A stretch of 64,000 nucleotides of DNA from positions 1 to 64,000 of IMG/VR virus record IMGVR_UViG_3300037110_000087. The stretch is one strand, 5' to 3'. This document shows, one piece after another, positions 3,496 to 37,497 of this stretch. Position 1 is the first letter of the stretch. Each line of letters starts with the position of its first letter. The notes under the pieces were generated by a model, which was given only the letters and a program-made list of their open reading frames with translations, searched no databases and was not told the origin of the DNA. Both the position numbers and the translations under genes were made by a program.

Positions 3496-3712
3496 AATCC
3501 TCTGCGCAAAGTGTAGTGCGGTACTGGTGGCCAGGGAATATGGATCTAGCGGTATCTTCTGGGCCTGTCCCAACGGTCATGGTGGCATTGAAGACCAAAT
3601 CCGTCACGTGAAGAAGAAGATAGAAGCCAGGAGGAAGTTCCACGAGGAAGCCAAAAAGTGGAACAAAGTCCCTTGTCGCTCCAAGGTCAAATCTTGGGGA
3701 TATCCCTGTTAG
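3485..3712 (+). CDS. small zinc-ribbon-like protein
   Basis: CAKC...WACPNGHG. Confidence 0.55.
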   Translation: METRILCAKCSAVLVAREYGSSGIFWACPNGHGGIEDQIRHVKKKIEARRKFHEEAKKWNKVPCRSKVKSWGYPC

Positions 3713-4629
3713 TGCTTGGTAAAATTCTCCCAATCATAACGCTTAATTGGATAGCCCAGCTGCATCAAGTTGTTAACATTGGCACGATAACGTAGAATAT
3801 CCTCGTATTCTTTATACCCAATCATTCTTTCGGCGGTATCCATACCATGTTTAGCAATGAAATCTTCCCACCAATCAAGCGCTTTCTGCATTTTGGGGGG
3901 TTCTTCATGAATCCATAGAATCGTTCCTTCCGGAATCTTTAATGAGTGATCTTTAACGAACCATTCACCCTCATCATTATAGATTCTGCCTATCTTGGTT
4001 AGCGCTTTTAATGTGGCTTCTTCCACATCTATAAGGGTGAAAGGAACATTGGCATGACCGCGATTAGGTTCCATCCACGCATCTAAGAACCCCCGATAGA
4101 TAAAATCAGCCAGCTGTTTCACGGTATTAGACTTTTCTGGATGACTTCTAGCCCAAAAGGCCACATGCTGACCGGCCTCTACGTATTTTAGATCATAGTA
4201 GGCTCTACTATTAAAACTATCCATAGCTTTCATGACTTCATTAGCTACATTATGCAGTACATGATGTCTGGCTTGGGATGAACCATATTTGTCATCATAG
4301 ATTCGATAAAGAGCCAACAGATCCTTGGACACTAGATAAGCTGGATTATCATACATCACTCTAGACAGATTATTAATCGTAGTGGTTTCCCATCCTGGCA
4401 TCTGAAGAAATGCACCACGGCTACCAAACTGGCCGACGATTGACTCACTAGACGAAATTCCCCTAATGCCATCTAATTGTCTGGCCTTCAATTGGGCTAA
4501 TACTTCATCACACTTGGGTTGCCAATCTCTTCCATGTTGCAACCACGTGTCTATGACTACATAAAAATACTCAGGGACATCTTGCCCTGAGTATGATCTA
4601 GCAATTTTGGCTTTAAGCGTAAGCTTCAT
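3709..4629 (-). CDS. hypothetical protein with N-terminal MKLxLxAx[VIL] motif
   Basis: 306-aa ORF starting MKLTLKAKI. Confidence 0.75.
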   Translation of the reverse strand: MKLTLKAKIARSYSGQDVPEYFYVVIDTWLQHGRDWQPKCDEVLAQLKARQLDGIRGISSSESIVGQFGSRGAFLQMPGWETTTINNLSRVMYDNPAYLVSKDLLALYRIYDDKYGSSQARHHVLHNVANEVMKAMDSFNSRAYYDLKYVEAGQHVAFWARSHPEKSNTVKQLADFIYRGFLDAWMEPNRGHANVPFTLIDVEEATLKALTKIGRIYNDEGEWFVKDHSLKIPEGTILWIHEEPPKMQKALDWWEDFIAKHGMDTAERMIGYKEYEDILRYRANVNNLMQLGYPIKRYDWENFTKH

Positions 4630-4632
4630 GCC

Positions 4633-5013
4633 TTATTCTAACATTGGATTGGGCAGATCAAACTTAGCGCCTATATCCTTTAATCCATCATAAATCAAAT
4701 TGAAAACAATGCATGGTGGAATTTTATTCAGCTTGGGCTGGAAAGCATAATTAAACCTACTTTTGATGAGACTCTCTCTATCCTTCGATTCATGAAGATC
4801 GGCCACAAGTTTCCCAATATCCCTCGAACCGAACTTCTGAGTTCCGAGAAAACAAATATGATCATTACTCTTTCTCACAAATTCTAGTCTAGGAAGCTCC
4901 CAAGAAGGTTTGGCTTCTTCCAGAGCGACAGTTACAATATCTTCTCTTTCCATATAATCATCCTTGCCCCAGCCATGTTCCCATAACTTTGGTACAAATC
5001 CTGCTCTTCCCAT
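4633..5013 (-). CDS. hypothetical protein
   Basis: 126-aa ORF, RBS AAGGAG. Confidence 0.7.
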   Translation of the reverse strand: MGRAGFVPKLWEHGWGKDDYMEREDIVTVALEEAKPSWELPRLEFVRKSNDHICFLGTQKFGSRDIGKLVADLHESKDRESLIKSRFNYAFQPKLNKIPPCIVFNLIYDGLKDIGAKFDLPNPMLE

Positions 5014-5025
5014 GGTTTCTCCTTA

Positions 5026-6480
5026 TCAACCAAACGCGTTACCTTGAACTGCAAATGGATTAAATTCCCCTCCAATGGGGTCATTGAGGGTAGCAGCAGT
5101 CGTCGATGCTGCAGGGTTGTGTTCATCTACTTCGGTGATCCTCTGACAGGTCAGATCGAAGTTAGTTTGGAATTTGCTGACACCGATGTTTCTGCCCTTG
5201 GCAATTCTGATCTCTACCAGACCACCACCAGACTCCCACAAATCAGGACCCACAATCCACTTCATGAAGACGTCACAGTCGTCAATCAGACCCTTGGAGT
5301 AACGAAGATCCTGAGTCTCAAGGTTCAACTGCTGGCCGGTCACCATCACTACGCCCTTACCGTTGTAGGCTTTGCCAGCGATCTGCTTCAACTGTCGACC
5401 GATCGTCTTAATGCGCAACCAATCCGGATCATTATCATTACCAGAACTCATCAGGTTGATGTAGTCGATAATCACCACATCATACTCGTCCTCAGCAAGC
5501 TCCTTGAGTACATCCTCGCAGCGTAGTTCACTAAAGGGCTTGATAATTAGACGGTTCCCGCTCTGACTCAGATTAGTGTTCATCTTAGTCAGCTCAATAG
5601 TGGTGAGATCCCGGTACTGCTGGACCTCCTGGATCTTCCTGGCCTTCTCCTCTGGAGTCCGTTCGAATTCCAACAACAGGGATTCTGGCATTGAAATATC
5701 ACGGATCTTCTTGAATGGATAACCACCCCGAGCAGCTACGCATCTATGCCAGATCACTTCGGGCTTGACTTCACCGGTCAGATATAGGGCACTCACTCGC
5801 TGATTAGGATTCTCAAATAACATGTTCAGCATCATCTGAATCATGCCCATTGACTTACCATGAGAGGAGGGAGCGGCCATTACTACAAAGTCTCCTCTGG
5901 AAAACCCACCAGAAGCCTTATCAATGGTCCTGAAGCCAGTCCTAATATACTCGCCACTACCTGCCGTGGTGATCCGGTTGATGGCATTCTGTAGATCCAT
6001 TCCCCGGCCTAGACCCAGAGGAGGCCGATGGTCGATCAGGAGGGTACTGTTGAAGCTATCCAGCCCCACCATCAGCTTTGAACTGGCATCCCTGGCTCCA
6101 AGCTTACCCTCCTGGAGGTTTTCCAGGACCGGGGTAATCATAGTAACTAGGCTCTTCCCATTGTAATGATCTATTAATGGATCGGTGATGACCTCTAGCT
6201 GGCCCTCCGTCTGGACTGAGGGGACGTAAGCTAGGGCCGCGATGACCCCACGACTGACCTGGGATATACTTTCGTTGACCGAAAGGGCCTCAGGGGCTAT
6301 TAGATTAGGGTCGCCACTCCCCAACTGCTCTCGGACGTAAACGAATACATCGGAGAGGGTACTAAAATGCTCCGGGGTGAACCGGGTCATAATCCAGGTC
6401 TTGAGGCCCTGGTCACCATAGATTAGGGCCTTGATAACTACTTTTTCGATTTCAAACAAACTATACGGTGCTAAGGGCAC
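5026..6480 (-). CDS. dnaB: DnaB-like replicative helicase (divergent)
   Basis: Walker A AAPSSHGKS, Walker B VIIDYINLM, QQLN, DLRYS, KGRN; DnaB-like length. Confidence 0.85.
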   Translation of the reverse strand: MPLAPYSLFEIEKVVIKALIYGDQGLKTWIMTRFTPEHFSTLSDVFVYVREQLGSGDPNLIAPEALSVNESISQVSRGVIAALAYVPSVQTEGQLEVITDPLIDHYNGKSLVTMITPVLENLQEGKLGARDASSKLMVGLDSFNSTLLIDHRPPLGLGRGMDLQNAINRITTAGSGEYIRTGFRTIDKASGGFSRGDFVVMAAPSSHGKSMGMIQMMLNMLFENPNQRVSALYLTGEVKPEVIWHRCVAARGGYPFKKIRDISMPESLLLEFERTPEEKARKIQEVQQYRDLTTIELTKMNTNLSQSGNRLIIKPFSELRCEDVLKELAEDEYDVVIIDYINLMSSGNDNDPDWLRIKTIGRQLKQIAGKAYNGKGVVMVTGQQLNLETQDLRYSKGLIDDCDVFMKWIVGPDLWESGGGLVEIRIAKGRNIGVSKFQTNFDLTCQRITEVDEHNPAASTTAATLNDPIGGEFNPFAVQGNAFG

Positions 6481-6530
6481 TTCTTTTACTCCAGATGGGT
6501 GTGTATGTTCCTAACCAGGATGAGTTAAGA

Positions 6531-6818
6531 TCAGACCGGTGGGATAAATCCCTCTTCCAAGGCTCTCTTTCTGCAACTATTAGGAAAATAGACGGAATTA
6601 GCTCTGTCCTTTCCGTCCTTCTTAGGGCTGAACAATAATCCTCTTTCGGCCATTAGGTTAATCACTCCAGAGATATGGCTTTTATCTTTGAATCCAGCTT
6701 TATTGAAAATCTCTTTATTCCTTACAAAGATATCATTCCTTGAAATCCGATAATCGAAAGTTAGATATTTCGACCTCCAAAAGAAATCCAGGACTAGACT
6801 CTCTTCCATTATCAACAT
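6531..6818 (-). CDS. hypothetical protein
   Basis: 95-aa ORF. Confidence 0.6.
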   Translation of the reverse strand: MLIMEESLVLDFFWRSKYLTFDYRISRNDIFVRNKEIFNKAGFKDKSHISGVINLMAERGLLFSPKKDGKDRANSVYFPNSCRKRALEEGFIPPV

Positions 6819-6832
6819 CTAGAGATCTCCAT

Positions 6833-7264
6833 TCAGAGGCTAGGTAGTATTTGGTTCCGAAGTTCCATCAATAGACGTCCGAGATGGTTCATTCCCAACT
6901 CGTCGCAAACTCCCCAGTAAACGTCATTCCACGAGTTCCCTTCTTCCAGATAAGCATCACCTGTCCTAATGAGGGCATCCTTTAGATCCTGGTGACTAGT
7001 GAACTTATACCAAAGAATCTCCCACATCACCTGTAGTTTGACCTGATCCCAGTCTTCTCTAATCTTAATTCTGCGTCCAAGCTTCTTAGAGTCATTTGGC
7101 TCAAGATTCTGAAATTGCTTTCTGAGTTCCGTATCTGTAGTCTTCGCAGCCTGATAAGCAGCCTCGCTGTTGAGGTACATTAGACCCTCGTAGTAAATCA
7201 GACAGGGATGGTAAAAATTGGATAAGAACCGGTATTTACCATCAAATGAATCAATCTTTTCCAT
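6833..7264 (-). CDS. NADAR (YbiA-like) family protein
   Basis: FLSNFY, SEAAYQAAK, W..VK..VM..IL..KF, TGD..LEEGN.W.D.YWG, GMNHLGRLLMELR. Confidence 0.9.
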   Translation of the reverse strand: MEKIDSFDGKYRFLSNFYHPCLIYYEGLMYLNSEAAYQAAKTTDTELRKQFQNLEPNDSKKLGRRIKIREDWDQVKLQVMWEILWYKFTSHQDLKDALIRTGDAYLEEGNSWNDVYWGVCDELGMNHLGRLLMELRNQILPSL

Positions 7265-7514
7265 CCTGATACTCCTTTTTCATCTTGCTCAGCTGTTTCT
7301 TCTGCTCAGGAGTCAGTCGGGGGATTTTATATCCATCTCTGTCGCTAGGATGATAAGTGAGAGTCCAAGAATCATAGAACTCCTGGCTTTCCTTTAATAT
7401 TTCAATAGCTCTAGTAATAGAAGCTGCACCAGTACTAAAAGTGCTACCACCACCATAGGGTTCATCTCCCGTCCACATGACAACTTCAATATAGTATTCT
7501 CTTTTAAGTTTCAC
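7251..7514 (-). CDS. hypothetical protein
   Basis: 87-aa ORF. Confidence 0.65.
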   Translation of the reverse strand: MKLKREYYIEVVMWTGDEPYGGGSTFSTGAASITRAIEILKESQEFYDSWTLTYHPSDRDGYKIPRLTPEQKKQLSKMKKEYQDGKD

Positions 7515-7522
7515 GACTTCTC

Positions 7523-8209
7523 CTAAAAGTGCAGTTCATTGTTATCATATACCCCGTATTTGGCCGCCCAATCAGAGATCGCTTCAGCTATCTTCTGGTT
7601 AGATCCAAATTTATCCAACAGAATTTGATGAGCTGGGGTACCTTGAAGCCTAGGCGCGGTATTAAAATCGATCGCCCCCAAGTAAATTCCTTCTTCGGTT
7701 TTCTTAGCCACGAAATCAATGGCAAAGACAGCATTGCCTACTTTCTTACAAGCCTCTTCAATTTCTTCTTTGTTGAGAATTCCATCTCTTAGAGGACCTA
7801 GGTCACCATCACCACAGTTAGATTTCCAATCATCAGTGGACCAATGTTCAAACCAAGCTCCCTGCCCAGCTATAACGAAATAACGGAAACTTAATCCTGG
7901 AAAATCCGGAATATATTCAGAAGCGTAGCAAGAATCAACATCCTGAGGGAAGATTCCATCCTTTACTAAGAGTTTGCCCTCGCCACAATGAGCGTAGTTA
8001 TCTGTGTAAACCACCCAGGGTTTACATGGTTCGACGTATACAACTTTCTCATACTCTGGATGAACTAGACCAAGATCATCAAATAATCCAAACATAGCAG
8101 ACCGACTAACCTCCCACGAACCGACCGCGATCCGCTTGAAGACTAGATCTGATTCAAGATCAAACCAGCAGTCATAACAGTCATGATAATCAGTCTTGAG
8201 AGAGATCAT
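7523..8209 (-). CDS. possible ATP-grasp-fold protein
   Basis: C-terminal FAIDFV...AIDFNTAP resembles the RimK-type D...ExN motif; HCGEGK loop. Confidence 0.4.
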   Translation of the reverse strand: MISLKTDYHDCYDCWFDLESDLVFKRIAVGSWEVSRSAMFGLFDDLGLVHPEYEKVVYVEPCKPWVVYTDNYAHCGEGKLLVKDGIFPQDVDSCYASEYIPDFPGLSFRYFVIAGQGAWFEHWSTDDWKSNCGDGDLGPLRDGILNKEEIEEACKKVGNAVFAIDFVAKKTEEGIYLGAIDFNTAPRLQGTPAHQILLDKFGSNQKIAEAISDWAAKYGVYDNNELHF

Positions 8210-8212
8210 TGT

Positions 8213-8506
8213 TTAGATATTCTTCCAGCCGGAATCAGTGGCGATGAGGGAGACACTCGCACGGGGAGGGATCTCAGTCCCTAACATACCATCAATTCTT
8301 GCGTGTCCACCGAAAATCCCTAGGAGTGATTTACTATCATTCTTGATGATATATAATCTACCTACTCCACATCTACGAATGGAGGGAAGGTAAAAGAAAG
8401 CGTCGATATCACCTTTGTAGATGACGCAAACGTCGGTCAAATCAATCAAATAATCCTCAGTTCGCTCCACATAGCCAATTGCAACACCGATATTTAAAGA
8501 CATCAT
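8213..8506 (-). CDS. hypothetical protein
   Basis: 97-aa ORF. Confidence 0.6.
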   Translation of the reverse strand: MMSLNIGVAIGYVERTEDYLIDLTDVCVIYKGDIDAFFYLPSIRRCGVGRLYIIKNDSKSLLGIFGGHARIDGMLGTEIPPRASVSLIATDSGWKNI

Positions 8507-9156
8507 TTTACTCCAAGAATGGTGACAGGGACCACGCTGTCGATTGAGTCGATATAGAAGGCATGAGTGGGAGTGTTTCCTATTTTATCGAAAAAGTCCT
8601 GCGGGACCATGTTCGAAGCCGCAAAGATTCGGTAACTACTGGTCATCAGATCCGATACCGCACAGGATACCTGATTTGGGACGTCCTTGAGGATCGACGG
8701 GACCATTACCACATTCGGAGCCTCACCAGGATCTGGCTCGTTAATCAACTTCCACAGCACCGAACTATGCATATTGGTGATCCGGTAGGGCCGGGAACTC
8801 CTAGCATAAATGGTACTGCACATCATATGTTGAACTGTATATTCGAGCAGCTGCGCATACTTGATGTTGTCACAACAGAATAAGATGAAAGTGGAATCAG
8901 GGGCATTCACTCCATTTGGCTCCCAGGTCTTCACATATTCCTTCAGTTGATTCCACTGATTTTGTTGATCCTGGATACTCACCGAATAAAGAGGTAGACC
9001 CTTCTTCTTACCTTCCGCTGGCTTTCTGGTTATTTCGAATTCTCTGAATCTGACTTCATTGGCAAGAGAGCGCCAAAATTGCGCTGGCATTCCGGATTGG
9101 AGCAAGAATTTTTCATAGAAAGTTTTGGCTCGTTTGGAGTCGTTATGGTTGAGCAT
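8503..9156 (-). CDS. hypothetical protein, weakly reminiscent of a degenerate DnaC/IstB-like loader
   Basis: N-terminal LQSGMPAQFW; no intact Walker A. Confidence 0.6.
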   Translation of the reverse strand: MLNHNDSKRAKTFYEKFLLQSGMPAQFWRSLANEVRFREFEITRKPAEGKKKGLPLYSVSIQDQQNQWNQLKEYVKTWEPNGVNAPDSTFILFCCDNIKYAQLLEYTVQHMMCSTIYARSSRPYRITNMHSSVLWKLINEPDPGEAPNVVMVPSILKDVPNQVSCAVSDLMTSSYRIFAASNMVPQDFFDKIGNTPTHAFYIDSIDSVVPVTILGVK

Positions 9157-9283
9157 AGGGTTCCTTATCTTCAGTAACAGTAGGGACTCTTAGACAAGAC
9201 TCATCCAATCGATCAATTAGATCATACATACCATAACGGTTCAAGCGGTTGATCAGGTCAAAATAATCTTCGTCTTGGGTCAT
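9143..9283 (-). CDS. small hypothetical protein (46 aa)
   Basis: Read by hand as MTQDEDYFDLINRLNRYG...YAQP; fills the gap between the flanking genes. Confidence 0.5.
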   Translation of the reverse strand: MTQDEDYFDLINRLNRYGMYDLIDRLDESCLRVPTVTEDKEPYAQP

Positions 9284-9284
9284 A

Positions 9285-10160
9285 CTACCAACCTATGATC
9301 ACCTTTGTCCAACCTTTTGGATCAATGTCTATCTTAGTCATTAATGTATAATCACGATCAGATTCTATCAGTTTAAAACTAGGACTTGAGTTACCTAGAC
9401 TAAACCCCAGAGTTATGAAGCTGATTGGATAATTATTGTAAGGGGGCAGGTTGTACTGTAGATTTAGTTCGGGAGTCCGCTTGGCTCCATACTCATACCC
9501 AAGGATAATAGAATTTATGGGAGAAACAGACCTGATTCTAATACAAGATTCATTCACGAAATTGATTTCCGGAATAAGTAAATAAGACCCATCTCCAATA
9601 TCTTTCTTCGCAATGCGATCAATTCTGAAGTGATTTTTATCAGTAACCACCACTTTGTCATTTACGATATTTCCCTTCAAATCCAACATAATTGACTGAT
9701 TGGTCACCAATCCGTGACTATTATCAGTCACGAGAATGGAAGTATCCTCAGCTACATACTTCATCGGCCTCCATTGACCCAACCCCTTGATAATACAACT
9801 AATCATGGGTGCTAGGGTTTGCTTGAAGGAATAAGGCGTCAGCGGGTAGTTATGAAAAACTGTCTCTAGTGCATTCCCACTCTCTACTCGGAGCCATCGT
9901 CCCTTTGGTGGACGATCCGCTGGTGCGACAACTTTTAAACCATCGAAGATCTCCATATTCTCACTATCATATTTATAATGACAGTTTTCCTCATGAATAT
10001 GTCTGAAATCTCCGTGTTTGCAATCACCACTAATAATCTCGTATAGATCAGATAGGGAAGTTAGAGTAGTCTTCCAACTAGAACCGGATTCCCCTTGAGC
10101 TAGGAACCTAACGTTCTGCTTAGTTATTGGGTCAAATTTAGTGTAATATACTTCGCTCAT
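9285..10160 (-). CDS. hypothetical protein
   Basis: 291-aa ORF. Confidence 0.7.
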   Translation of the reverse strand: MSEVYYTKFDPITKQNVRFLAQGESGSSWKTTLTSLSDLYEIISGDCKHGDFRHIHEENCHYKYDSENMEIFDGLKVVAPADRPPKGRWLRVESGNALETVFHNYPLTPYSFKQTLAPMISCIIKGLGQWRPMKYVAEDTSILVTDNSHGLVTNQSIMLDLKGNIVNDKVVVTDKNHFRIDRIAKKDIGDGSYLLIPEINFVNESCIRIRSVSPINSIILGYEYGAKRTPELNLQYNLPPYNNYPISFITLGFSLGNSSPSFKLIESDRDYTLMTKIDIDPKGWTKVIIGW

Positions 10161-10848
10161 TTTCTCGGTCCAATTCAGTCCTGGTCGTTAATCTAATCGT
10201 CTTGATTTTTAGTGGATTAAATACAATTGCGTGTCTAACCTGACCATAATATGCTGATTCCATGGTTACAACTGTACCATCCCACCATTGGCTCATTCTC
10301 TCAAGATAAGACTTGGCATCGCCAGGATAAAAATCCGCCCAGACCTGAGTAAAAGCATCAAAAGGACCATCCGAGTATGTAATCATACCATTAACAGCAT
10401 CTCTTAAGGCTTTATAATAGTCTTCTCCCCAGTTTTCAAGAGTTTCTTTGTAGTCGGGTGCTCTCTTGATCAACCATTCAATGCGATCTCGGTATCTCCA
10501 AACTGAACCAACTCGTGGAACCAGTTTTCTTAGATTCAGTTTGACAAAAGCTATATTCTCTCCATAACTCCTAGCGTTTCTCAAATCTGAAGTAAAATAT
10601 AATCCAGGACCTTGGTTGTCGTTTGCACCTTTCAAACCTACATTATCAAGGACCCATTCGGATCGAGGTCGATCGGACCCATGATACCAAACTTCAGGAA
10701 GATTCTTAACGGCAGATACATAAGGGACCTGATTATGCTGGCAACCTTGGTCCCAGCTTTCGGTCAAAACCGGTTCACCCTCATCTGGTTTAATATTCCA
10801 TTTACTTGGCTTTCTGGTAATTACCTTAGCTTGAAGGATCAGTCGCAT
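10138..10848 (-). CDS. ADP-ribosyltransferase-like protein (ART-PolyVal-like) with N-terminal motif
   Basis: WYHGS...GPGLYFTSD...ARSYG...HAIVFNP. Start placed at ATG 10848 (MRLILQAKV) after GGAG. Confidence 0.7.
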   Translation of the reverse strand: MRLILQAKVITRKPSKWNIKPDEGEPVLTESWDQGCQHNQVPYVSAVKNLPEVWYHGSDRPRSEWVLDNVGLKGANDNQGPGLYFTSDLRNARSYGENIAFVKLNLRKLVPRVGSVWRYRDRIEWLIKRAPDYKETLENWGEDYYKALRDAVNGMITYSDGPFDAFTQVWADFYPGDAKSYLERMSQWWDGTVVTMESAYYGQVRHAIVFNPLKIKTIRLTTRTELDRENERSILH

Positions 10849-11380
10849 CTCGCCACTCCAGTATTCCCAAATATTCAAAGTCTTCCTGATGGTTGTAATA
10901 ATCATCCGGTTCTACGCATTCTGGATGAAGACACCATTTAGTGTTGTTCTTAAGGTCATCAACCAGAGCTACTGCTGCAGAGCACACAACATTCGCTGAT
11001 TTAAATAACTTTGCCAACATAGGTCGATGTTGCCAAGTCCTAATCACTAACCCTATCAAATGATTAAGAGCACAATCAAGGATTCCTAGGATGCCGTATG
11101 GTTTTTGATCGAATAGAACTTTTTGGGCCGAGGGGACAGTAAATCTTGGCCTCATCACGTGAATCACTTCTCCTGATATGAGTGTGTACATAGAAAGAAT
11201 GGACTGGGTTCTCACTTTCAATTGTTCCAGAAGGACCTGTTCAGAACCGACATCCTGAATCACTGCTGTATGAGAAAACTGTGATTTAGTAGCGAATCTG
11301 ATTGACTTCACGAACAGACTTTGATTAGTCTTAAATTCGTATAATAAAACATCACCATGTTTGAGTTGATCCAGATACAT
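10826..11380 (-). CDS. permuted papain-like amidase (YiiX/YebB-like NlpC/P60)
   Basis: HGDVLL...FSHTAV (His) precedes VVCSAAV (Cys), which is the permuted order. Confidence 0.75.
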   Translation of the reverse strand: MYLDQLKHGDVLLYEFKTNQSLFVKSIRFATKSQFSHTAVIQDVGSEQVLLEQLKVRTQSILSMYTLISGEVIHVMRPRFTVPSAQKVLFDQKPYGILGILDCALNHLIGLVIRTWQHRPMLAKLFKSANVVCSAAVALVDDLKNNTKWCLHPECVEPDDYYNHQEDFEYLGILEWRDATDPSS

Positions 11381-11937
11381 TATTCCACCTTAACATTTAG
11401 GGGAATTGTCTGGACTACTCTATCAGCGATTATATCTATCGAATCCGAATTCCTTATGATAATTTTGTCCCTGAAATAATCGGCCCACTTGAATTCAAAG
11501 AATGGAATAGGAGTCTTCTTCAAATTACCTAATTTGATCAATTTCCAGACCAAACTCCTGTAGGGATCATCAGCCATACCCCGAATATCCGCAGGTAACT
11601 GATAATACTCTCTCTTCCGTCCATATTGATCCACCGCACGAACCCAAGCAGCCTTTTCCATCAACTCCCAAAAATTGAGATCATCAAAAGAAGAGAAATC
11701 GGCCTGCTCAATGATGGTGACATTCTTATGACCCAATTCGTGATAGGCCCTCAACAGATGATGATGGTCATTCACATATAAACCATGCCTCGACTTTATC
11801 ACCGGCACTGGATGACTATCATCGTATTTATGGAATTCGTCCTTAGACATCTTTTCATAAATAGCCATTTTGGCCTCTATTTCTAGGAGGCCAATGGCTA
11901 TTTGTGATGGTTTTAGATCCAGTATTCTAACTCGCAT
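11380..11937 (-). CDS. ParB-like nuclease-domain protein
   Basis: LKPSQIAIG, PVPVI...YVNDHHH, DDPYRSL, PFFEFKWADYFR. Confidence 0.75.
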   Translation of the reverse strand: MRVRILDLKPSQIAIGLLEIEAKMAIYEKMSKDEFHKYDDSHPVPVIKSRHGLYVNDHHHLLRAYHELGHKNVTIIEQADFSSFDDLNFWELMEKAAWVRAVDQYGRKREYYQLPADIRGMADDPYRSLVWKLIKLGNLKKTPIPFFEFKWADYFRDKIIIRNSDSIDIIADRVVQTIPLNVKVE

Positions 11938-11970
11938 GGAATGACATCCCTCATTCCATTAGATCATGAA

Positions 11971-12762
11971 TTATGCCACCATCTGCTGAACCCAGAAGTC
12001 ATCCGCCAAATTCTCATCAAGCAGATAAGCCTTGGGCAGTAGAAAATAACCAGCGATACCCCAGGTGATATTCCAGGAGTTGCGCATAATCCAGTTACCT
12101 TCCTCGTCATAGCCCACAATCATTACTGCGTGACCACCTAGGCAATTTTCCGAAAGAAAAGGCATTGGGACACGACCGGTGACAGCAACTGCGTCGGATT
12201 CAAACGAATCATAGAGAGTGATGCCCACCATGACCGGAAATCCGCTGGCGAGGACTTGCTTGATCGAGTTCTCATCTTGATTGACTCTAGCGTACTGTGT
12301 CAGTTCGTTCTTAGCCCCGTCTGCGTAGACAATTGAGGGAGGCTTGATGGCGAATTTGGTAATGTCATAGGCCCAATCAATCTCGTTGCATGCACCTAGG
12401 GTATTAAGAGTTTTAATGACATCTCTTAACATGCAACCGGAATCAGAAGCTACCGAATTTTCCATCGCACGAGCATTATAATAGATAGCTAGTCTGGAAG
12501 GAGTCCAGATATCCAACTTAGCCTTGGCACGAGCGAAAATATAGGCGGCTCCACCAGAGTGAGCCGCACAGGATCCCAATTGGCCCTGATCCCAGATCGG
12601 AGGCATGAAAGGAGAAGTACGGAGATCTACTGAGGGAGGGGGTACGACAGAAGGAAAACTGGCCTTAAAGTCGCGATGATCAGGTACGTCTGGCTTCCAA
12701 CCATAACGGTTGAACTTCTGTTCTTCTTTAAAAAACCAGCTAAATAACTGCTTGAATCCCAT
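11971..12762 (-). CDS. papain-like cysteine peptidase (family C1A)
   Basis: DQGQLGSCAAH, GGHAVMIVGY, RNSW, WGIAGYF. Confidence 0.9.
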   Translation of the reverse strand: MGFKQLFSWFFKEEQKFNRYGWKPDVPDHRDFKASFPSVVPPPSVDLRTSPFMPPIWDQGQLGSCAAHSGGAAYIFARAKAKLDIWTPSRLAIYYNARAMENSVASDSGCMLRDVIKTLNTLGACNEIDWAYDITKFAIKPPSIVYADGAKNELTQYARVNQDENSIKQVLASGFPVMVGITLYDSFESDAVAVTGRVPMPFLSENCLGGHAVMIVGYDEEGNWIMRNSWNITWGIAGYFLLPKAYLLDENLADDFWVQQMVA

Positions 12763-13101
12763 TTATTCTCCTTTAGCGTACAATTCTTGGTAGGTCTTAT
12801 TCTCGAATTCAGCATGATATTCGTGGTAAGAATCCCAAGTGCTATGATCCTTAACCCTAATCATCTTGAAATCTCCCTTGATGCTAATGGCATCACCATG
12901 TTCGTCCTGAAACAAACCATGCTGATCCACAAATACTCCTCGCAACTTCCAGACATCCATAATCCGACCACCAGAGTCATTACGGACAATATAATCACCG
13001 GTGTAAGAGCCAAAGAATCCACCATCATGAGCAATATGATTCTGAAGATTAGCACAGCCGACAAGACTGAATAGAGCTAGTGCAAGTATAATTCTCTTCA
13101 T
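12763..13101 (-). CDS. putative lipoprotein
   Basis: MKRIILALALFSLVGC: signal peptide with lipobox. Confidence 0.7.
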   Translation of the reverse strand: MKRIILALALFSLVGCANLQNHIAHDGGFFGSYTGDYIVRNDSGGRIMDVWKLRGVFVDQHGLFQDEHGDAISIKGDFKMIRVKDHSTWDSYHEYHAEFENKTYQELYAKGE

Positions 13102-14306: not shown

Positions 14307-14352
14307 CCATTCTCCTACAAGTAAGTGTATTTTCTATAACCGATTAAAAATT

Positions 14353-20090: not shown

Positions 20091-20315
20091 TCAGTTGGAA
20101 ACAGTTGGAGAGAGGGCTTTCATGATTTCACTAAACGCGTATGATAAATCCTCATAGGCAGATTTAAGATCTTCCAAGGTTTTGGATTTTGGTCCCTCTG
20201 AAACATATTGGCTCTTATTTTTATTCAATTCAAATGCTAAATCGAACATAATCTTAGTGATAGAACTAGGGCCAATATAAATGGCTTTCTTTGTTACATG
20301 AGCTATGATTTTCAT
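20091..20315 (-). CDS. hypothetical protein
   Basis: 74-aa ORF. Confidence 0.6.
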   Translation of the reverse strand: MKIIAHVTKKAIYIGPSSITKIMFDLAFELNKNKSQYVSEGPKSKTLEDLKSAYEDLSYAFSEIMKALSPTVSN

Positions 20316-20752
20316 TACTGACCTCTCAAAAGCTGAGTCCTAGGAGATTTCATTAGATGGCTAGCATCTCCAATAATCTTAGATCTAGCATCCCGCCATT
20401 CTTTCATTAATTCCTCTTTATGAAGAGAAAGGGGATTAATAGATTCCCCATCTGTTATTCCATATGCTGCGGCCTGAAATTCACTATCAATGACCGGTCT
20501 GATGACCTTTGCGACATCAGCTGCTGAATTAGCCATCAGATTATAATGAGCTACTCCAGACTCCGCTACTGCGCTATTCTCGACCACTCCATGAATCTCA
20601 TACCCCTGCTCTGATTCAATAATCTCGAAAATAAATGAAGGACCCCAAGAGTTCTCTAGGACAATAGACGGATGTCTAATAACCCCGTTGTCATCTTGGA
20701 TTTCATGGACAAATTCTGCTTTCTTCAAATTGGCTGTCAGATGTAGTTTCAT
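20315..20752 (-). CDS. hypothetical protein with N-terminal MKLxLxAx[VIL] motif
   Basis: Starts MKLHLTANL; RBS AAGGA. Confidence 0.75.
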   Translation of the reverse strand: MKLHLTANLKKAEFVHEIQDDNGVIRHPSIVLENSWGPSFIFEIIESEQGYEIHGVVENSAVAESGVAHYNLMANSAADVAKVIRPVIDSEFQAAAYGITDGESINPLSLHKEELMKEWRDARSKIIGDASHLMKSPRTQLLRGQ

Positions 20753-26168: not shown

Positions 26169-27948
26169 ATTCCAGGTAAGCTCTCGGGCCTAATTCAATA
26201 AAATCAACAATTGATTTAATAAAATGCACCTGATATGCTGAATTCTCATAGATCAGCAATTCAGGTGCTTTTCCATGTAGATCATTGCCTTTCATATCCC
26301 GATAAAGACTGTTATTCCACGCGTTTATGAAGTGGTAGATTCTATCCACCTTATCATGAATGCCCTTGATGTTCAATGCGTATTCAATGAACTTTCCCGC
26401 TGATTTAAATTGACTTGCCAGATACCAAGCCTTCTCATTCCAAGTCCCGTTTGAGATAATCTCCAATCTCATCCGATTCTCGGCGTTACCCCCGAATCTT
26501 AGATTCAGTTCATCCTTAAAAATCCCCTCAGCTGAGTAAGAGGAGGCATATTGCTTGCGACAGTAATCCCCTGTCTTCGCCAGCAGCCCAAGGCCCTCTA
26601 ATCTCAGTCTCCAATTGTAAAGTGTGTTATTAGAGACTTTCTCACATCCCCAGTCCTCCAAGACCGGGTTGTACATCTGTACTGGACGCTTACAATTATG
26701 AGCGGGGCCACTCTTAATAATTGTTCCATAGATGATCGTCATGAGTAGCGAATTGTAGACTGAACTCTGCACTGAGGACAATAGGCTGAGATCTTCCTCA
26801 TCAAGTTCAATTGCTAGTCTTGGTCCAAGTTTCCGTAAAAGAATTTCATATTGTTGATCCCTCTCCAACTTGCGGTTCTGCCACCGTGCACCCTTTGGCT
26901 TGCCCTGGTTGACAACCAATTTGACCAGTGCCTTCACACCTTGCTTGCTTAGAAGATGGGTATCATAACCATTAGGGTTCTGTTCAGTTGTATATTTTCT
27001 ATAATCAAAGGGATCCTCCTCTGGCTCCTCTTGAATCAGATCTGAGGCAGGTTTGATCACCAATGAAGGGTAGACCTCCTTGCTCATTAAAAGTTCAGTA
27101 ATCTCTAGACTGAGGAAACAATTAGTGGTGCTAGAGTCAGTCTTATCCAGGATTCGTTTATCTGGCTTAGCCCCACAAGCCATGTTAACCACTGGGGCAA
27201 GATTACCAAGGAATCGATCAATATACCAGTCCCGTAATCTCGCTCTCACCTTATGATTCCAACTAGAATTCGCTCCAATCAGAACAGGAACGAAGATCTT
27301 AATTCCCTCTCTGCTTGGGGATAACAGTACTGGATGAGGAACTAATTTCTTAATATCCTCTTGGAATTCATGGATTGAGTCATAACCGACTGCTGGGTAG
27401 GTATCAAAATCTATGAATAGGACAGTTGGCCGATCTACCGGACAAGAACCATCACTAGCTATAAATCTCTTGGACTTGTAGTGGTTCCCTCGATCAAGGG
27501 CCATCACTAGGTTTTCTTTCTTGTCAAAATGGTGAGATCGATAGATTGCTGATTTTAGATTCTTAGGAAGTGGGAGGAGCTGTCCCTTAATTCCTCGCTT
27601 GGATTCTAGGGTTCGGGATGCCTCATAAATAGAAGTGCTCCTACCAAGCGAGAATTCCAAGCTCCTCCTGCCACCCACATGCTTGTAATCGACAAAGCCT
27701 GTATCAAGGAGTTTACCAAATTGTTGTGGGATCAGTTCATCACCAAACCATTCCAATCTTCGAATGATCCTTGGGGTGATCTCAATCCCGCTATAGGGCG
27801 ACATCGCTTCAGCCAGTTTGGAAAGAATCTCTCTGGCGTCAAACAACTCCCCGGATTCAGTATCTACCCAATCATAACCGCTACCAAATGGATCTCTTGA
27901 GTATTGATCGCCAAGATATTCATTAATCAACTCACTATAGGAATGCAT
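26143..27948 (-). CDS. putative AEP (primase-polymerase) superfamily protein with C-terminal winged-helix-like region
   Basis: VLFIDFD (motif I) and LLSPSREGIKIFV (SPSxxGxK, as in BT4734/VirE-N-like AEPs). Confidence 0.5.
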   Translation of the reverse strand: MHSYSELINEYLGDQYSRDPFGSGYDWVDTESGELFDAREILSKLAEAMSPYSGIEITPRIIRRLEWFGDELIPQQFGKLLDTGFVDYKHVGGRRSLEFSLGRSTSIYEASRTLESKRGIKGQLLPLPKNLKSAIYRSHHFDKKENLVMALDRGNHYKSKRFIASDGSCPVDRPTVLFIDFDTYPAVGYDSIHEFQEDIKKLVPHPVLLSPSREGIKIFVPVLIGANSSWNHKVRARLRDWYIDRFLGNLAPVVNMACGAKPDKRILDKTDSSTTNCFLSLEITELLMSKEVYPSLVIKPASDLIQEEPEEDPFDYRKYTTEQNPNGYDTHLLSKQGVKALVKLVVNQGKPKGARWQNRKLERDQQYEILLRKLGPRLAIELDEEDLSLLSSVQSSVYNSLLMTIIYGTIIKSGPAHNCKRPVQMYNPVLEDWGCEKVSNNTLYNWRLRLEGLGLLAKTGDYCRKQYASSYSAEGIFKDELNLRFGGNAENRMRLEIISNGTWNEKAWYLASQFKSAGKFIEYALNIKGIHDKVDRIYHFINAWNNSLYRDMKGNDLHGKAPELLIYENSAYQVHFIKSIVDFIELGPRAYLESRVQMAHC

Positions 27949-28047
27949 GATACCTCATGTGCCTTATAACCATATGTCGGTTTGTTGGGACAAAACCTTC
28001 TGCTCCATTATAGGAACCGGAAATGTTAGAATACTAGTAGGTGAATT

Positions 28048-28380
28048 GTGCAAAAGAATCCCTTGTCTAAAATCTGGTGGACGAAGAGTCCTGGACGAAG
28101 ACCCCAGAGGTTACCTTTCTGCCTTCCTGTGTCAGAGGAAGAAGTTAGACGAGATCCAGCGATCAAAGGAAAAATACCTAGGAGAACTACCTTCTCTGTA
28201 ACTGAACCTGAGTTGGAAAGAAAAGCAGTGCAGGATGAGGACGAATGGGATAATCTGTGTGGTAAGTATCATTACAAGGTAAGCCGAGATCCAAGTGACA
28301 AGACTAGTACCGCTTGGTTCAATGGTAAACAAGTTGGATACTGGGATGGAGAGGATCAGGAAGGCTGGGTTGGGATATGA
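28048..28380 (+). CDS. hypothetical protein (start uncertain, possibly GTG 28129)
   Basis: ORF ends with a 4-nt overlap on the next gene. Confidence 0.5.
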   Translation: MQKNPLSKIWWTKSPGRRPQRLPFCLPVSEEEVRRDPAIKGKIPRRTTFSVTEPELERKAVQDEDEWDNLCGKYHYKVSRDPSDKTSTAWFNGKQVGYWDGEDQEGWVGI

Positions 28381-29729
28381 AACTAATCCTAAGAGCTATG
28401 ATCAGGAAAGCAGTCAATGAATGGAGAGGCTGGGTCACTGGGGAGTATTGGATCGAAAAGGACGGAGGCGAGACTGAATGTAGTGGTGATGGTGAATATG
28501 ACCACGAGAGTTACGCCAAAGAGGTCATTGCCAATCATTATTCAGATGAGGCCCAACAAACACTGTTCCGATTCTTTGGTCTGGGACCCGATGGGAAAGA
28601 CCTGCCAGGAAATCGAAAGACCAAAGCCAAGGAAAATCGAATTGAATATCCTATGGAATTTAGTCAATGTGTTGATTATGAAGAAGTGGTCAGAATGATG
28701 TGTGAAGATAAGTATCCGGCAAGGGAAGAGGATTTCATGCCGGATGCTCTCATGTATAGACATGAAATCAGGAAGTTCTTCCAGAAGTACTTTGAAGCAG
28801 TTCATGTAGTTAATAATTACTTTGGTTGCTGGATTGTAACCGACGACATAGTAAAGAATATTGGGACTTACCTAATGAATAGGTCCGAAGAGTATAGTTA
28901 TGATTATAACGAACGGGATGTTTTGTATTTAGAGGAAATTGGAGTAAAAAAGGTCAAAGAATACAAAGTGATCGAATTCTTAGTCTGTGATCATGCGACA
29001 GATTTAAGGAAAATTCAGCAGGATATCGAGAGACTCGCTGATGGCAGCATGAAAGATACTGAACCCACTGTCAAGAACAAGGAAAAACTACCCAACGAGA
29101 AGCCCAACAAATGGGTTAAGCCGAAGGTCACCACTCAGAACTATATTGATAAAACTCCTCTTGAAGATCGCATGACCTGCAGACAAAGAGAACGTGACAA
29201 CGCGTTTAATCAAGAAGCAGGCTGGGAAGATCCGCTCCCTGGCCAATTCGACTACTGGTTCAAAGGATCAAAGGTCGTGGACAAGAAAGGTCGCCCTCTT
29301 GTCTGCCATCATGGCACTCCTGATAGACGGAGATTAGACGAATCGCAGAGATTCGAAAGTAAGAATAACGCGTATTTTTTCACTCCTGATGTAAATGTTG
29401 CCAAGACTTACGCTAATCCTACGAGAGCGTGGGACTATCAGGAATGTGTCCCAGGTGTTTTGAGCTTCTTCCTTAAGATTGTTGATCCTATGATTGTTGA
29501 TTGGAGAGGGCAGAGATTCCATGGAACTCAAAAGGTAATTGAAGAGGCTCGCGAGAAGGGTCATGATGGCGTGATTATCAACAATGTGATCGATAATTAT
29601 TCAAATTATGATATTAATAAGCGTAATAAGCCGACCACCGTATATGTGGTGTTCAATCGAAATCAGATGAAGTCAATTGATAGTGAGTTGTTTACAGATA
29701 GCGACGAATTCACTGCCTCTAGGGAATAA
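28377..29729 (+). CDS. multidomain protein with C-terminal ART-PolyVal-like ADP-ribosyltransferase domain and N-terminal motif
   Basis: KGSKVVDKKGRPLVCHHGT...YFFTPD..VAKTYA...GHDGVII.NV.D...VYVVFN..QMKS; starts MKLILRAMI. Confidence 0.8.
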   Translation: MKLILRAMIRKAVNEWRGWVTGEYWIEKDGGETECSGDGEYDHESYAKEVIANHYSDEAQQTLFRFFGLGPDGKDLPGNRKTKAKENRIEYPMEFSQCVDYEEVVRMMCEDKYPAREEDFMPDALMYRHEIRKFFQKYFEAVHVVNNYFGCWIVTDDIVKNIGTYLMNRSEEYSYDYNERDVLYLEEIGVKKVKEYKVIEFLVCDHATDLRKIQQDIERLADGSMKDTEPTVKNKEKLPNEKPNKWVKPKVTTQNYIDKTPLEDRMTCRQRERDNAFNQEAGWEDPLPGQFDYWFKGSKVVDKKGRPLVCHHGTPDRRRLDESQRFESKNNAYFFTPDVNVAKTYANPTRAWDYQECVPGVLSFFLKIVDPMIVDWRGQRFHGTQKVIEEAREKGHDGVIINNVIDNYSNYDINKRNKPTTVYVVFNRNQMKSIDSELFTDSDEFTASRE

Positions 29730-29761
29730 CAGGTTATACAGATAAGAGTCCCTATTCTAGG

Positions 29762-31339: not shown

Positions 31340-31364
31340 ATAGATAGAATTCATGGAGTAAGTA

Positions 31365-32081
31365 ATGAAACTGACACTTATCGCAACTGTCACTAGAGAA
31401 GCAAACAAATACATCGTGAATAAGCCTGGACACAAGGATAGCAAGGGTAAACCCGCTCCCTGGTGTGTAGTGGACAAGAAGGGTAAGATCATTGGCAGTC
31501 ATGCTACCAAGGAATTAGCTGAAAAAGCGTTCCGTGGTATGGAAATGAATAAGCATGCTGAATACCTACCTAATATCATCAACAAGCGTACTCCTGAGAA
31601 CAACAAGAGTAAGATCGAGCACAACAAGGACGTCGAGAAGGACGAGAAGAATGAACGTTTCTCTCCCAAGGGCGAGGACGAGAAGAATGATCGCTTTGAA
31701 CCCAAGAAGCTGTTGAAGGATAAGCCAGCTGAGAGACTCAATCCCAAGGTGGAGACTGACAAGCCCAATACTCGCTTTGAACCCAGGGGTCTGCCCAAGG
31801 ACGAGAAGAACGACCGTTTCTCAGGCAAAACCGCCAAGAAAGAGATCCCTTTTGATTCTGCGAGTCATCTCAAGGCTATTTGGGAAGGTTCTGTGATCGC
31901 CAAGATCCTGAAGAAGCTGGAAGCTGCTGGTCCTTTCTCCGTGGAAGAGGGCAAGTCTGCTGCCAGACAGGCATTGACTAAGGTCGAAGACACCTTCATC
32001 AGTCGCTATTCTGAGGAGGAATGGGACGAGATGAAACCAAAGCTCTTGACCAAGATCGTCAGAGCACTCAAAGTCAAGTAA
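31365..32081 (+). CDS. charged repeat-containing protein with N-terminal motif; candidate internal head protein
   Basis: Starts MKLTLIATV. Contains WCVVDKKGKIIGSHATKELAEKAFRGME.NKH and DEKNxRFxPK repeats; biased codons. Confidence 0.7.
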   Translation: MKLTLIATVTREANKYIVNKPGHKDSKGKPAPWCVVDKKGKIIGSHATKELAEKAFRGMEMNKHAEYLPNIINKRTPENNKSKIEHNKDVEKDEKNERFSPKGEDEKNDRFEPKKLLKDKPAERLNPKVETDKPNTRFEPRGLPKDEKNDRFSGKTAKKEIPFDSASHLKAIWEGSVIAKILKKLEAAGPFSVEEGKSAARQALTKVEDTFISRYSEEEWDEMKPKLLTKIVRALKVK

Positions 32082-32082
32082 T

Positions 32083-32322
32083 ATGAAACTACATCTGATA
32101 GCCACTCTCAATTTAGATATTAAACTCCTTGATTGGAGTAGTGGAGATATATGCGTTAATGGGAAAGATATGACCGGCCCTGAGGCCGAGAAGTTTATTC
32201 TGAGCCACGAAGATAGCACCCCCGTAGCTCTTTCTAGAGCCTATAGTAAGAGACATAGAGGGATCCACAGAACTACCGTGGGTGATCTGCGCAGGGAAAA
32301 GAATGGCTGGTGGAGCTGGTAA
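32083..32322 (+). CDS. hypothetical protein with N-terminal motif
   Basis: Starts MKLHLIATL. Confidence 0.7.
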   Translation: MKLHLIATLNLDIKLLDWSSGDICVNGKDMTGPEAEKFILSHEDSTPVALSRAYSKRHRGIHRTTVGDLRREKNGWWSW

Positions 32323-32363
32323 GATCCTTTCTCGCCATGGAAGCCAATAAACACGGATAATTG

Positions 32364-32705
32364 ATGAAACTTCACCTTAGGGCTTCACTTGGGTATATCA
32401 CTAAACAACAAATGCTCGATCAAGGGGGTAGTGGATACCTTGATCGAGCATTTCTTTGTATGATACCCGTCTTGAAGATAGAAGGGAGGGAGCCTAATCC
32501 TGCTGCTTCCGATGAGGAAGGGTATAAGAAGGGCCGAAAAATATTGGTTCCTATCGAAGTAGAATACCGAGCGAGTGAAGATTTGTATTACTTATATGCA
32601 GGCAATCATCGAGTAGTTCAAGCAGAAATCAATGGGGATCAGATGATCAAGGCGTGGGTCCAACCTGATCAAGGACGAGTGGGTCCTTCTGCAAGGAAAT
32701 TATGA
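32364..32705 (+). CDS. ParB/Srx-like domain protein with N-terminal motif
   Basis: PIEVEY...YYLYAGNHRVVQAEING...IKAWV; starts MKLHLRASL. Confidence 0.65.
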   Translation: MKLHLRASLGYITKQQMLDQGGSGYLDRAFLCMIPVLKIEGREPNPAASDEEGYKKGRKILVPIEVEYRASEDLYYLYAGNHRVVQAEINGDQMIKAWVQPDQGRVGPSARKL

Positions 32706-32748
32706 GACTAAATGACCTAGGTTAAAAAACCTAAGGGAGTTTTGCCTT

Positions 32749-33375: not shown

Positions 33376-33376
33376 G

Positions 33377-34468: not shown

Positions 34469-34517
34469 GCTTACCAAGTTGATTAGCAGGTTATAAACCT
34501 ATAAGTAGGGGTGTGTT

Positions 34518-36374: not shown

Positions 36375-36382
36375 CGAAATTC

Positions 36383-36391
36383 TGCTAAACT
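36383..36391 (+). promoter_or_regulatory. extended -10 element (TGcTAAACT), probable leaderless start
   Basis: Ends 7 nt before ATG 36399; no SD sequence. Confidence 0.4.
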
Positions 36392-36398
36392 GGATACT

Positions 36399-36953
36399 AT
36401 GGAACTATATTCCTATCAATCTCCTGAGGTTGTGGCACTAATCCACACACAAGGTCGTTATTTACCTGCTTGGAATAGGTGTAATTGTTTCGAAGAGGAC
36501 CAGTGGCAGTTTGAGTGTTCCTACCGGTTTATGGTGGATCAATATAACCGGATTAAAAAGACCAACTTTGATACACCCCCAGTTTTTTGGTACACTGAAT
36601 TGAGACAGGCCAAACGGAACATGAAGTATGTCAAGCGAGGGGTGATGCTCATTGCTCAAGTTCCGGATGAAGCGATCCTGCAATATGACTCAGAAGATTG
36701 GTATGGAGCTTTGAACCTTTATGGAATTGGGTTTGGTCATAATTATGGTGATGTACCTAATTGGGAGCGTTTTGATAAGATCTGGGACGCTTACAAAAAG
36801 AACCCCAGAGCTATGGAGGAAAGCTGGAAGGAAATCTTCCATCTCCCTTTGTGCAAGAGGGAGAGAGTGGAAGTTCATGCGGTTACTATGGAAATCCAAC
36901 TGGAGTGGATATTCCAACAAGATATATTCCAACAAGATATTGTGCCACTCTAA
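36399..36953 (+). CDS. DUF3841-like protein
   Basis: SYRFMVDQY...PVFWY...QVPDEAILQYDSEDWYGALN. Confidence 0.5.
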   Translation: MELYSYQSPEVVALIHTQGRYLPAWNRCNCFEEDQWQFECSYRFMVDQYNRIKKTNFDTPPVFWYTELRQAKRNMKYVKRGVMLIAQVPDEAILQYDSEDWYGALNLYGIGFGHNYGDVPNWERFDKIWDAYKKNPRAMEESWKEIFHLPLCKRERVEVHAVTMEIQLEWIFQQDIFQQDIVPL

Positions 36954-37002
36954 ATAGTCAAACCGTGGTTTAATAATAAAAGCAATTTTCACCAGGGATA
37001 CA

Positions 37003-37497
37003 ATGAAGCTTAATTTGAAAGCCAGAGTCATAAAGCAGGAAGGCAACCTCTGGGGCCTCCGGGCAGAATACTGGGACAGTGGATCCGGTGCCGCAGGGTG
37101 TATTTTCTTCTGTCCAGCTACTCGCAGATGGTTAGTATCATTCCGGTCCGCGCATGTCATGGAACCTCATACCTGGGGTATCTGGGGTGGCAAACTAGAT
37201 GGAAGGGAAACTCCGCTTGAAGCTGTGAAGAGAGAAGCCGAAGAGGAAACTGGACACTCTGCTGAGGGTATTGAGTTCATTCCTTCTTACGTCTACCAAG
37301 ATGGATCTTTTAAATACCGAAATTTTATAGCTATCGTGGATGCTGAGTTCGAACCAGAGATGGACTGGGAGACTGAAGGTTTTAGATGGTGTAAGATTAA
37401 TGAATTTCCCAATAAGCTACATTTTGGGTTGAAGGCACTTTATCCTTATCTGGTTGATTTTGATAAAGGTTATAATAACGAGGAGAAACAAGCATGA
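37003..37497 (+). CDS. NUDIX hydrolase with N-terminal motif
   Basis: WGIWGGKLDGRETPLEAVKREAEEETG; starts MKLNLKARV. Confidence 0.9.
   Translation: MKLNLKARVIKQEGNLWGLRAEYWDSGSGAAGCIFFCPATRRWLVSFRSAHVMEPHTWGIWGGKLDGRETPLEAVKREAEEETGHSAEGIEFIPSYVYQDGSFKYRNFIAIVDAEFEPEMDWETEGFRWCKINEFPNKLHFGLKALYPYLVDFDKGYNNEEKQA

Follow-up and report, generated by a model that had tools for sequence, protein, structure and literature searches.

A strictly N-terminal nine-residue tag on unrelated proteins of an uncultured jumbo phage, a candidate label for head packaging

The best-described N-terminal address label for phage head packaging is the capsid-targeting sequence (CTS) of T4, carried by the internal proteins IPI-III and by Alt. 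Foreign proteins are packaged when fused to no more than the initial 10 residues of IPIII, with residues 4 and 7 acting in targeting and residues 8 and 10 in processing, and Alt is itself packaged (PMC9026906, PMC5694885, PMC3012670). In P1, DarB's N-terminal 30 residues are enough for capsid targeting (PMC9024508). N-terminal regions also target the head-internal or ejected proteins of phiKZ and SPN3US, including the gp53/gp54 paralogues, which share an identical 15-residue start (PMC5694885), and the polyvalent proteins of phages and conjugative elements have been proposed to be co-injected with DNA (PMC7824862). Here, we describe an N-terminal peptide, M-[KR]-L-[THIN]-L-x-A-x-[VIL] (hereafter the tag), encoded repeatedly in the genome of an uncultured jumbo phage. 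It was originally predicted in a stretch of 64,000 nucleotides (the window) that corresponds to bases 1-64000 of the Joint Genome Institute (JGI) metagenome contig 3300037110|Ga0395724_000015 (307,124 bp), identical to IMGVR_UViG_3300037110_000087. We read this contig up to 141,981 bp (~142 kb, 46% of the genome) and scored the 159 open reading frames (ORFs) of its first 132 kb. The tag is a strictly N-terminal modular peptide on a flexible extension, common to unrelated proteins, and may serve as a sorting label for the phage head.

All eight starts of the original prediction are present, each at its position and on its strand, heading ORFs of 79-450 residues (Table 1). When N-termini were compared with a shuffled background, as had been suggested, M[KR]L.L.A.[VIL] was found at 8 of the window's 2196 ATGs, whereas 100 shuffles gave 0.04 on average and never more than 1. 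Stripped of its Met, the core occurs nine times in the six-frame translation of the window: eight copies directly follow a start Met, and the ninth crosses stop codons. In the first 132 kb (41,497 residues), it was observed 15 times versus 0.43 expected, with none away from a start; 14 copies lie right behind the start Met, and the fifteenth, MAKLFLRAGI, is likewise at a start. Beyond the window, we located six strict tags and three near variants, giving totals of 14 and 3 up to 142 kb, the interval from 132 to 142 kb adding no further tag. One of the variants, MKLHFVAKG, provides a better start for an ART-PolyVal fragment. For the gene at 10848, the longest ORF begins 19 codons upstream, but it would overlap the preceding gene by 80 nucleotides (nt), and a GGAG lies 8-11 nt upstream of the tag start. 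Overall, about 10% of the phage's proteins carry the tag in the part of the genome read.

A tag scoring matrix parts the ORFs cleanly into tagged and untagged, with 15 scoring at least 19.8 bits, one at 9.1 and all others at or below -3.5. Three starts that had been listed as looser variants (25776, 48640 and 50784) scored -7 to -11 bits and are, therefore, not members; the one at 25776 belongs to a different N-terminal module family. The background set, comprising distant PolA phages from IMG/VR and distant PolA metagenome loci (1.74 Mb of unrelated sequence), yielded one match, which is signal-peptide-like. Among the 117 stretches listed by a collection-wide scan with the DNA pattern, several matches were found in this contig only, the remaining stretches being chance short ORFs or signal-like cores, bar one protein family that occurs singly in four contigs. 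As predicted, the tag is missing from replication enzymes and fibre proteins, and in the 142 kb read, it was not found on capsid, scaffold-like, tail or baseplate proteins either.

Beyond residue 10, the proteins are unrelated, none of the pairwise comparisons reaching significance (lowest E 0.034, in a very small database), and the spacing from tag to domain ranges from ~1 to ~40 residues. The NUDIX protein illustrates this modularity. We found 22 homologues without the tag, with 44-57% identity in the core and other N-termini, and PDB NUDIX 1jrk aligns to the tagged protein with an offset of ~33 residues. In its AlphaFold model, residues 1-26 have a predicted local distance difference test score (pLDDT) below 50, against more than 90 for the core. 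Similarly, residues 1-9 of the tagged 306-residue protein have pLDDT <50, whereas the remainder has a mean of 91; the alignments behind both models do not cover the tag. GAP32_436, a homologue of the ART-like protein at 10848, is missing the first ~35 residues.

Within the tag, position 4 is limited to T, I, H or N, and the residues alternate between hydrophobic and polar or basic, giving the pattern of an amphipathic beta-strand, and polar or basic residues follow at positions 10-12. The hydrophobic moment averages 0.74 at 170 degrees, compared with 0.28 at 100 degrees, and the net charge is 0 to +4, in keeping with the initial remark that the alternating hydrophobics suit a docking beta-strand. 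The claim that the peptide is not a Sec signal also holds, given that hydrophobic residues merely alternate and residues 10-14 are polar or basic. Sec, Tat and lipoprotein signals, in which a basic n-region precedes the hydrophobic core and a cleavage box (AxA, lipobox Cys or twin-Arg), were considered and rejected: the tag lacks an uninterrupted hydrophobic core of 7-15 residues, and background matches with true signal-like cores look different.

The tagged proteins span 61-450 residues, each with at most one recognised domain. Pfam and PHROG matches confirmed the NUDIX assignment and the two ART-like assignments (ART, ADP-ribosyltransferase) made from the window sequence, and the charged-repeat protein at 31365 was recognised again on reading its sequence, whereas Pfam and PDB sequence searches gave no support to a ParB/Srx-like assignment for the gene at 32364. 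ART-PolyVal is found on four or five tagged proteins (28377, 98811, 99624 and, weakly, 10848), and an ExoX-like_C protein bears a variant tag. The remaining cargo includes several small proteins without a family match. The 306-residue protein belongs to a family with 292 relatives in a representative library (E up to 0.001) and no Pfam model, which often occurs as a domain in polyvalent-like proteins of 800-2500 residues, together with DarA_C in one of them, or with Tpt1/KptA, 2H-phosphoesterase or GNAT. Searches by tblastn with this protein and a homologue returned no match, and its AlphaFold model had no fold match in PDB or BFVD. Internal copies of the domain show L-x-[EA]-x just ahead of a conserved S-[FY]. 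A fusion of ART-PolyVal with NUDIX is present elsewhere (P0203). Conversely, in one place on the contig (L205:3451-4560), ART-PolyVal is split into separate small ORFs, one of 98 residues representing the N-terminal half and one of 140 residues covering profile positions 8-96; an unrelated tagged gene of 129 residues lies between the pieces, and every ORF has its own tag or tag variant.

Orthologues of the tagged proteins in relatives show best identities of 38-57%, a single 77% match being a truncated fragment. Relatives L287 and L288 hold no strict tag and one GTG-start variant, VKLRIVANL, and L295 has no tag cluster. In L003 (52% polymerase identity), there is one strict-tag gene, MKLTLVATV, adjoined by five tandem paralogues of 117-122 residues (L003:15320-17758) with M-x-[KR]-[LI]-x-F starts (MKKLSF.., MRKISF.., MPKLRF..).

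A further contig (L289; ENA ERZ27267771, k141_400169, 91.6 kb) encodes a NUDIX homologue 52% identical to the tagged one. In its interval 1189-14202, 12 of 17 adjacent and mostly uncharacterised genes start with M-[RK]-[YIF]-x-E/Q-[IL]-[IL]-x-E, as seen in MRFYEIISE, MRYRELITE and MKIEQIIYE; among them are the genes for this NUDIX homologue and for a protein homologous to the ART-like one at 10848. T4 IPIII starts with MKTYQEFIAE and IPI with MKTFKEFTST (NC_000866). The spacing of the L289 motif is that of Y-x-E-[FL]-I-x-E in IPIII, and it closes with [IL]-x-E, as does the logo for cleavage by T4 gp21, written 'LIE-9' (PMC9026906). Such CTS-like starts are much denser in L289 than in T4. Stand-alone members of the 306-residue family elsewhere often begin with M-[RK]-[FL]-x-x-[YF]-[LI]-x-E, abutting the domain, and the ART homologue P0197 begins with MRINEVV. 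Taken together, the starts in L289, in the 306-residue family and in P0197 indicate that, elsewhere, the same cargo families bear a T4-type capsid-targeting peptide in the slot that this tag occupies.

The resemblance to the T4 system lies in the arrangement: in both, ~10 residues from Met1 are shared by otherwise unrelated, non-essential, scattered effectors, with an ADP-ribosyltransferase among the cargo, and in T4, the peptide is modular and sufficient on foreign proteins (PMC9026906). The peptides themselves differ. The T4 consensus, M-K-T-[YF]-x-E-F-..., with hydrophobics at i, i+3 and i+4, is absent from this tag; the T4 peptide is acidic, has helical periodicity and ends in an [LI]-x-E protease site, whereas the tag is basic, has strand periodicity and lacks a conserved Glu. 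For the T4 and L289 peptides, which are both acidic, the hydrophobic moment is 0.29 at 170 degrees and 0.46 at 100 degrees. This physical unlikeness makes docking by beta-strand addition plausible. Furthermore, T4 has a gp23 capsid and a handful of tagged genes, versus a PaBG/phiRSL1-type capsid and a tenth of the genes here; gp21- or gp22-like genes were not recognised in the 142 of 307 kb read. The tag would, on these comparisons, work like a capsid-targeting sequence but fall outside the T4 family. As in P1, where a signal of less than 30 residues sends the injected anti-defence protein DarB to the head (PMC9024508), an N-terminal peptide is involved, and DarA_C co-occurs with the family of the 306-residue protein; however, the Dar proteins have no common N-terminal consensus, in contrast to the strict one on at least 14 proteins here. 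The propeptides of phiKZ and SPN3US are longer (80-130 residues), carry A/S-x-E protease sites and occur mostly on paralogues, compared with 9-10 residues on unrelated proteins in this phage. Polyvalent proteins have the same domain repertoire (ART-PolyVal, DarA_C) and are proposed to be effectors delivered with DNA (PMC7824862), but they are single giant multi-domain polypeptides rather than separate small proteins that are each tagged.

Given the polyvalent-type cargo and the T4-type capsid-targeting peptide on homologous cargo, packaging is the best reading: the tag would most likely sort proteins for host takeover into the head of the phage, a proposal to which we assign about an even chance. 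One common partner would read the tag, probably via strand addition, the likeliest candidate being part of the scaffold or core of the procapsid during assembly. The head would then enclose the tagged takeover or anti-defence enzymes (ART-PolyVal, NUDIX, the polyvalent-protein domain and small unknowns), which would enter along with the DNA at the next infection. The major capsid protein of this phage is ~30% identical to those of PaBG, phiRSL1, Lu11, Erwinia Y3-like phages, Motura and NCTB. Among these, Motura, NCTB, phiRSL1, Lu11 and PaBG are jumbo phages that Iyer et al. placed in subgroup 2.2 (PMC7824862). PaBG has a three-domain polymerase like that of this phage, its capsid protein loses ~20% of its mass on maturation, and head proteins of the PaBG group are proteolytically processed (PMC7412058). 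Five tagged genes are found no more than 7 kb from the capsid gene, a context that also speaks for packaging. Packaging and ejection, as originally put forward, thus find circumstantial support in the polyvalent cargo families, the CTS-bearing homologues and head processing in the PaBG group. The accompanying suggestion of cleavage after the invariant Ala7 found no support, no conserved Glu or other shared site being present within 30 residues of the tag.

A number of observations weigh against packaging. Relatives with 48-52% polymerase identity carry just 0-1 tag per 23 kb, and 8 of the 14 tagged genes sit among replication genes, not head genes. The tag has no conserved cleavage motif behind it, and a prohead protease was not recognised in the 142 kb of the genome read. 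The major capsid protein, the scaffold-like proteins of 183 and 369 residues and a virion protein of 221 residues are all untagged. Neither in sequence nor in charge or periodicity does the tag match the T4 CTS, ~10% of genes would be an unusually large cargo set, and the argument from cargo is one of guilt by association.

Selection could act on the nucleic acid rather than the peptide, with an initiation context, a regulator RNA site or a recombination hotspot spreading a 5' segment and mimicking a peptide motif. AAA encodes residue 2 in 8 of the 10 tags that have Lys there, compared with a genome-wide AAA share of 42%, and Leu3 is always CTN. Nevertheless, the Leu and Ala codons vary, as was noted at the outset. 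The proportions of gene pairs with the same codon at L3, L5 and A7 are 0.21, 0.17 and 0.32, versus 0.17, 0.17 and 0.30 expected from genome codon usage, so third positions are as random as expected from that usage; both CGA and AGA occur for Arg, TTR codons occur at Leu5, and the 30 nt upstream of tagged starts are not conserved. With synonymous codons random at these three invariant residues, it is the peptide and not the DNA that is under selection, and three invariant residues with randomised codons exclude a neutral remnant as well as an RNA or DNA signal. A nucleic-acid feature, largely refuted by this codon analysis, is very improbable. The nine residues might instead form a first structural or self-association strand for folding or oligomerisation, with no common receptor. 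Many proteins do start with a beta-strand of alternating hydrophobics, and the low AlphaFold confidence at the tag may merely reflect alignments that do not cover it. However, unrelated folds (NUDIX, ART and all-new alpha/beta) would not all need L-x-L-x-A, homologues fold without the tag, and the spacing to the domain varies; we consider this explanation improbable.

Two further alternatives accept a common receptor or reader and place it outside the head. In one, the tag docks the proteins, unpackaged, to another partner in the cell, such as a factory for replication or transcription, a site at the membrane, a chaperone, or one phage hub protein augmented by the strand. An amphipathic beta-strand fits strand addition to any partner, the structural proteins lack the tag, and tagged genes are interleaved with replication genes. 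This is, nonetheless, unlikely, since the 142 kb read showed no chimallin- or tubulin-type compartment genes, the polarity of the tag is too high for a membrane anchor or Sec signal, and the CTS-bearing homologues favour the head. In the other, the tag is an N-terminal degron for timed turnover, through which a host or phage AAA+ protease or unfoldase would remove early takeover enzymes on schedule. The tag is exposed and unstructured in the AlphaFold models, many tagged genes lie in the replication region, which looks early or middle, and a MoxR-type AAA+ gene stands between a tag cluster and the head genes. One N-terminal class of ClpX recognition signals, reportedly described by Flynn et al. 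in 2003, has a similar Met-basic-hydrophobic start. Yet turnover leaves unexplained both the T4-type capsid-targeting peptide on homologous cargo in another phage and the polyvalent or packaged nature of the cargo families, and known degrons do not require residues as strictly invariant as L3, L5 and A7 are here. We, therefore, judge a degron to be rather unlikely.

A second N-terminal module of ~35 residues, M-[ST]-K-L-[KN]-F-..-KKYP-x-I-x-F-[NH]-K-x-N-x-SGNDK-x-AV-x-PLK, was found on four proteins with different C-terminal parts. It is internally duplicated in two of them, making six copies, and adjoins genes with the nine-residue tag; like the tag, it might act in sorting, or else in binding DNA. 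In addition, two paralogous HNH/homing-endonuclease-like genes (phrog_559) lie one directly after the DNA polymerase gene and the other directly after the major capsid gene. Each is followed on the same strand by a gene with the nine-residue tag, one gene of 198 residues intervening in the polymerase case. In the capsid case, a gene with the second module comes after the tagged gene; in the polymerase case, such a gene is found on the opposite strand, upstream of the polymerase.

Table 1. Positions of tagged genes, second-module genes and landmark genes in the window and along the contig
Feature	Position	Strand	Length (residues)	N-terminus (bases)	Matches and remarks
Tagged gene, window	3709..4629	-	306	MKLTLKAKI (4629-4603)	Large uncharacterised family; no Pfam match
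Tagged gene, window	10138..10848	-	236	MRLILQAKV (10848-10822)	ART-like; ART-PolyVal E 1.6e-3, phrog_25279 E 5e-17
Tagged gene, window	20315..20752	-	145	MKLHLTANL (20752-20726)	No family match
Tagged gene, window	28377..29729	+	450	MKLILRAMI (28377-28403)	C-terminal ART-PolyVal, residues 302-439, E 2.7e-13
Tagged gene, window	31365..32081	+	238	MKLTLIATV (31365-31391)	Lys/Glu/Asp-rich, internal repeats
Tagged gene, window	32083..32322	+	79	MKLHLIATL (32083-32109)	
Tagged gene, window	32364..32705	+	113	MKLHLRASL (32364-32390)	
Tagged gene, window	37003..37497	+	164	MKLNLKARV (37003-37029)	NUDIX hydrolase E 5.6e-15, fold from ~residue 27
Strict tag, contig	91686	-			
Strict tag, contig	98811	-			ART-PolyVal E 1.8e-7
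Strict tag, contig	99202	-			
Strict tag, contig	100400	-			
Strict tag, contig	118035	+			
Strict tag, contig	121189	+			
Near variant, contig	68229	-		MAKLFLRAGI	
Near variant, contig	99624	-		MKLHFVAKG	ART-PolyVal E 1.8e-5
Near variant, contig	122381	+		MKVHLQATV	
Split ART-PolyVal, contig	98515-99624	-			
Second-module gene, window	25776-26168	+			
Second-module gene, contig	90663-91175	-			
Second-module gene, contig	119247-120302	+			
Second-module gene, contig	120312-121181	+			
HNH-like gene, window	21356-22801	-			phrog_559
HNH-like gene, contig	~91.7-93.1 kb	-			phrog_559
DnaB helicase, window	5026-6480	-			
UDG-exo-PolA type DNA polymerase, window	22743-25682	-			
Major capsid protein, contig	~93-94 kb (~93.1-94.3 kb; L205:8803-9921)		372		phrog_2522 E 1.8e-57

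The window also encodes a further helicase, two topoisomerase II subunits, a clamp loader and fibre-like proteins. No close relative was found among GenBank phages, the topoisomerase II matches being below 36% identity and the polymerase matches at ~24%; IMG/VR searches with the polymerase, singly or as a profile, retrieved only the contig itself and distant PolA phages. The loci listed by a metagenome scan were all distant PolA loci, the contig itself not being among those listed. A 27.8-kb contig from a second sample (L202; Logan SRR11596275_124689) has a gene order near-identical to that at 62-83 kb and at least one identical protein, and the phage, therefore, recurs in public data. In the major capsid protein, ~38 residues precede the start of the PHROG profile, and residues 10-16 (..FVATLTG..) recall the tag core L-x-A-T-[VL], a five-residue likeness to which we give no weight. 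The first 4000 bases of the window have a G+C of 0.495, versus ~0.44, and ORFs of odd composition, such as the Ser/Pro/Ala/Arg-rich one at 269-844 (-); they may be a contig-end or terminal region. The GC skew flips sign near 28 kb (27900-28400), where transcription diverges, genes lying mostly on the minus strand leftward and on the plus strand rightward. A fibre gene of 1057 residues contains, at 63083-63232, repeats of 9 nt arranged in runs (GGGGCCAGC and GCAACGGGC units), consistent with the collagen-like PHROG matches of that gene.

If the tag is indeed a packaging label, the injected proteins of an uncultured jumbo phage could be listed from sequence alone. Such a list would supply candidate anti-defence or takeover enzymes, several without a known family and one with a fold that has no match. 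The tag would also add to the T4 peptide another class of capsid-targeting sequence with different physical properties, with a bearing on scaffold-cargo recognition, and would offer a compact tag for loading foreign proteins and for engineered protein delivery by this phage group. Even with another fate for the proteins, such as degradation or localisation, a nine-residue code on a tenth of a viral proteome constitutes a defined, testable recognition system. More broadly, we tentatively suggest, at somewhat less than even probability, that short N-terminal zip codes, specific to each lineage, let huge phages load large, fast-changing effector sets into the capsid, with a newly evolved beta-strand code in this phage and a T4-type helical code in L289. 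If so, the injected-effector repertoires of uncultured phages would be readable directly from sequence.

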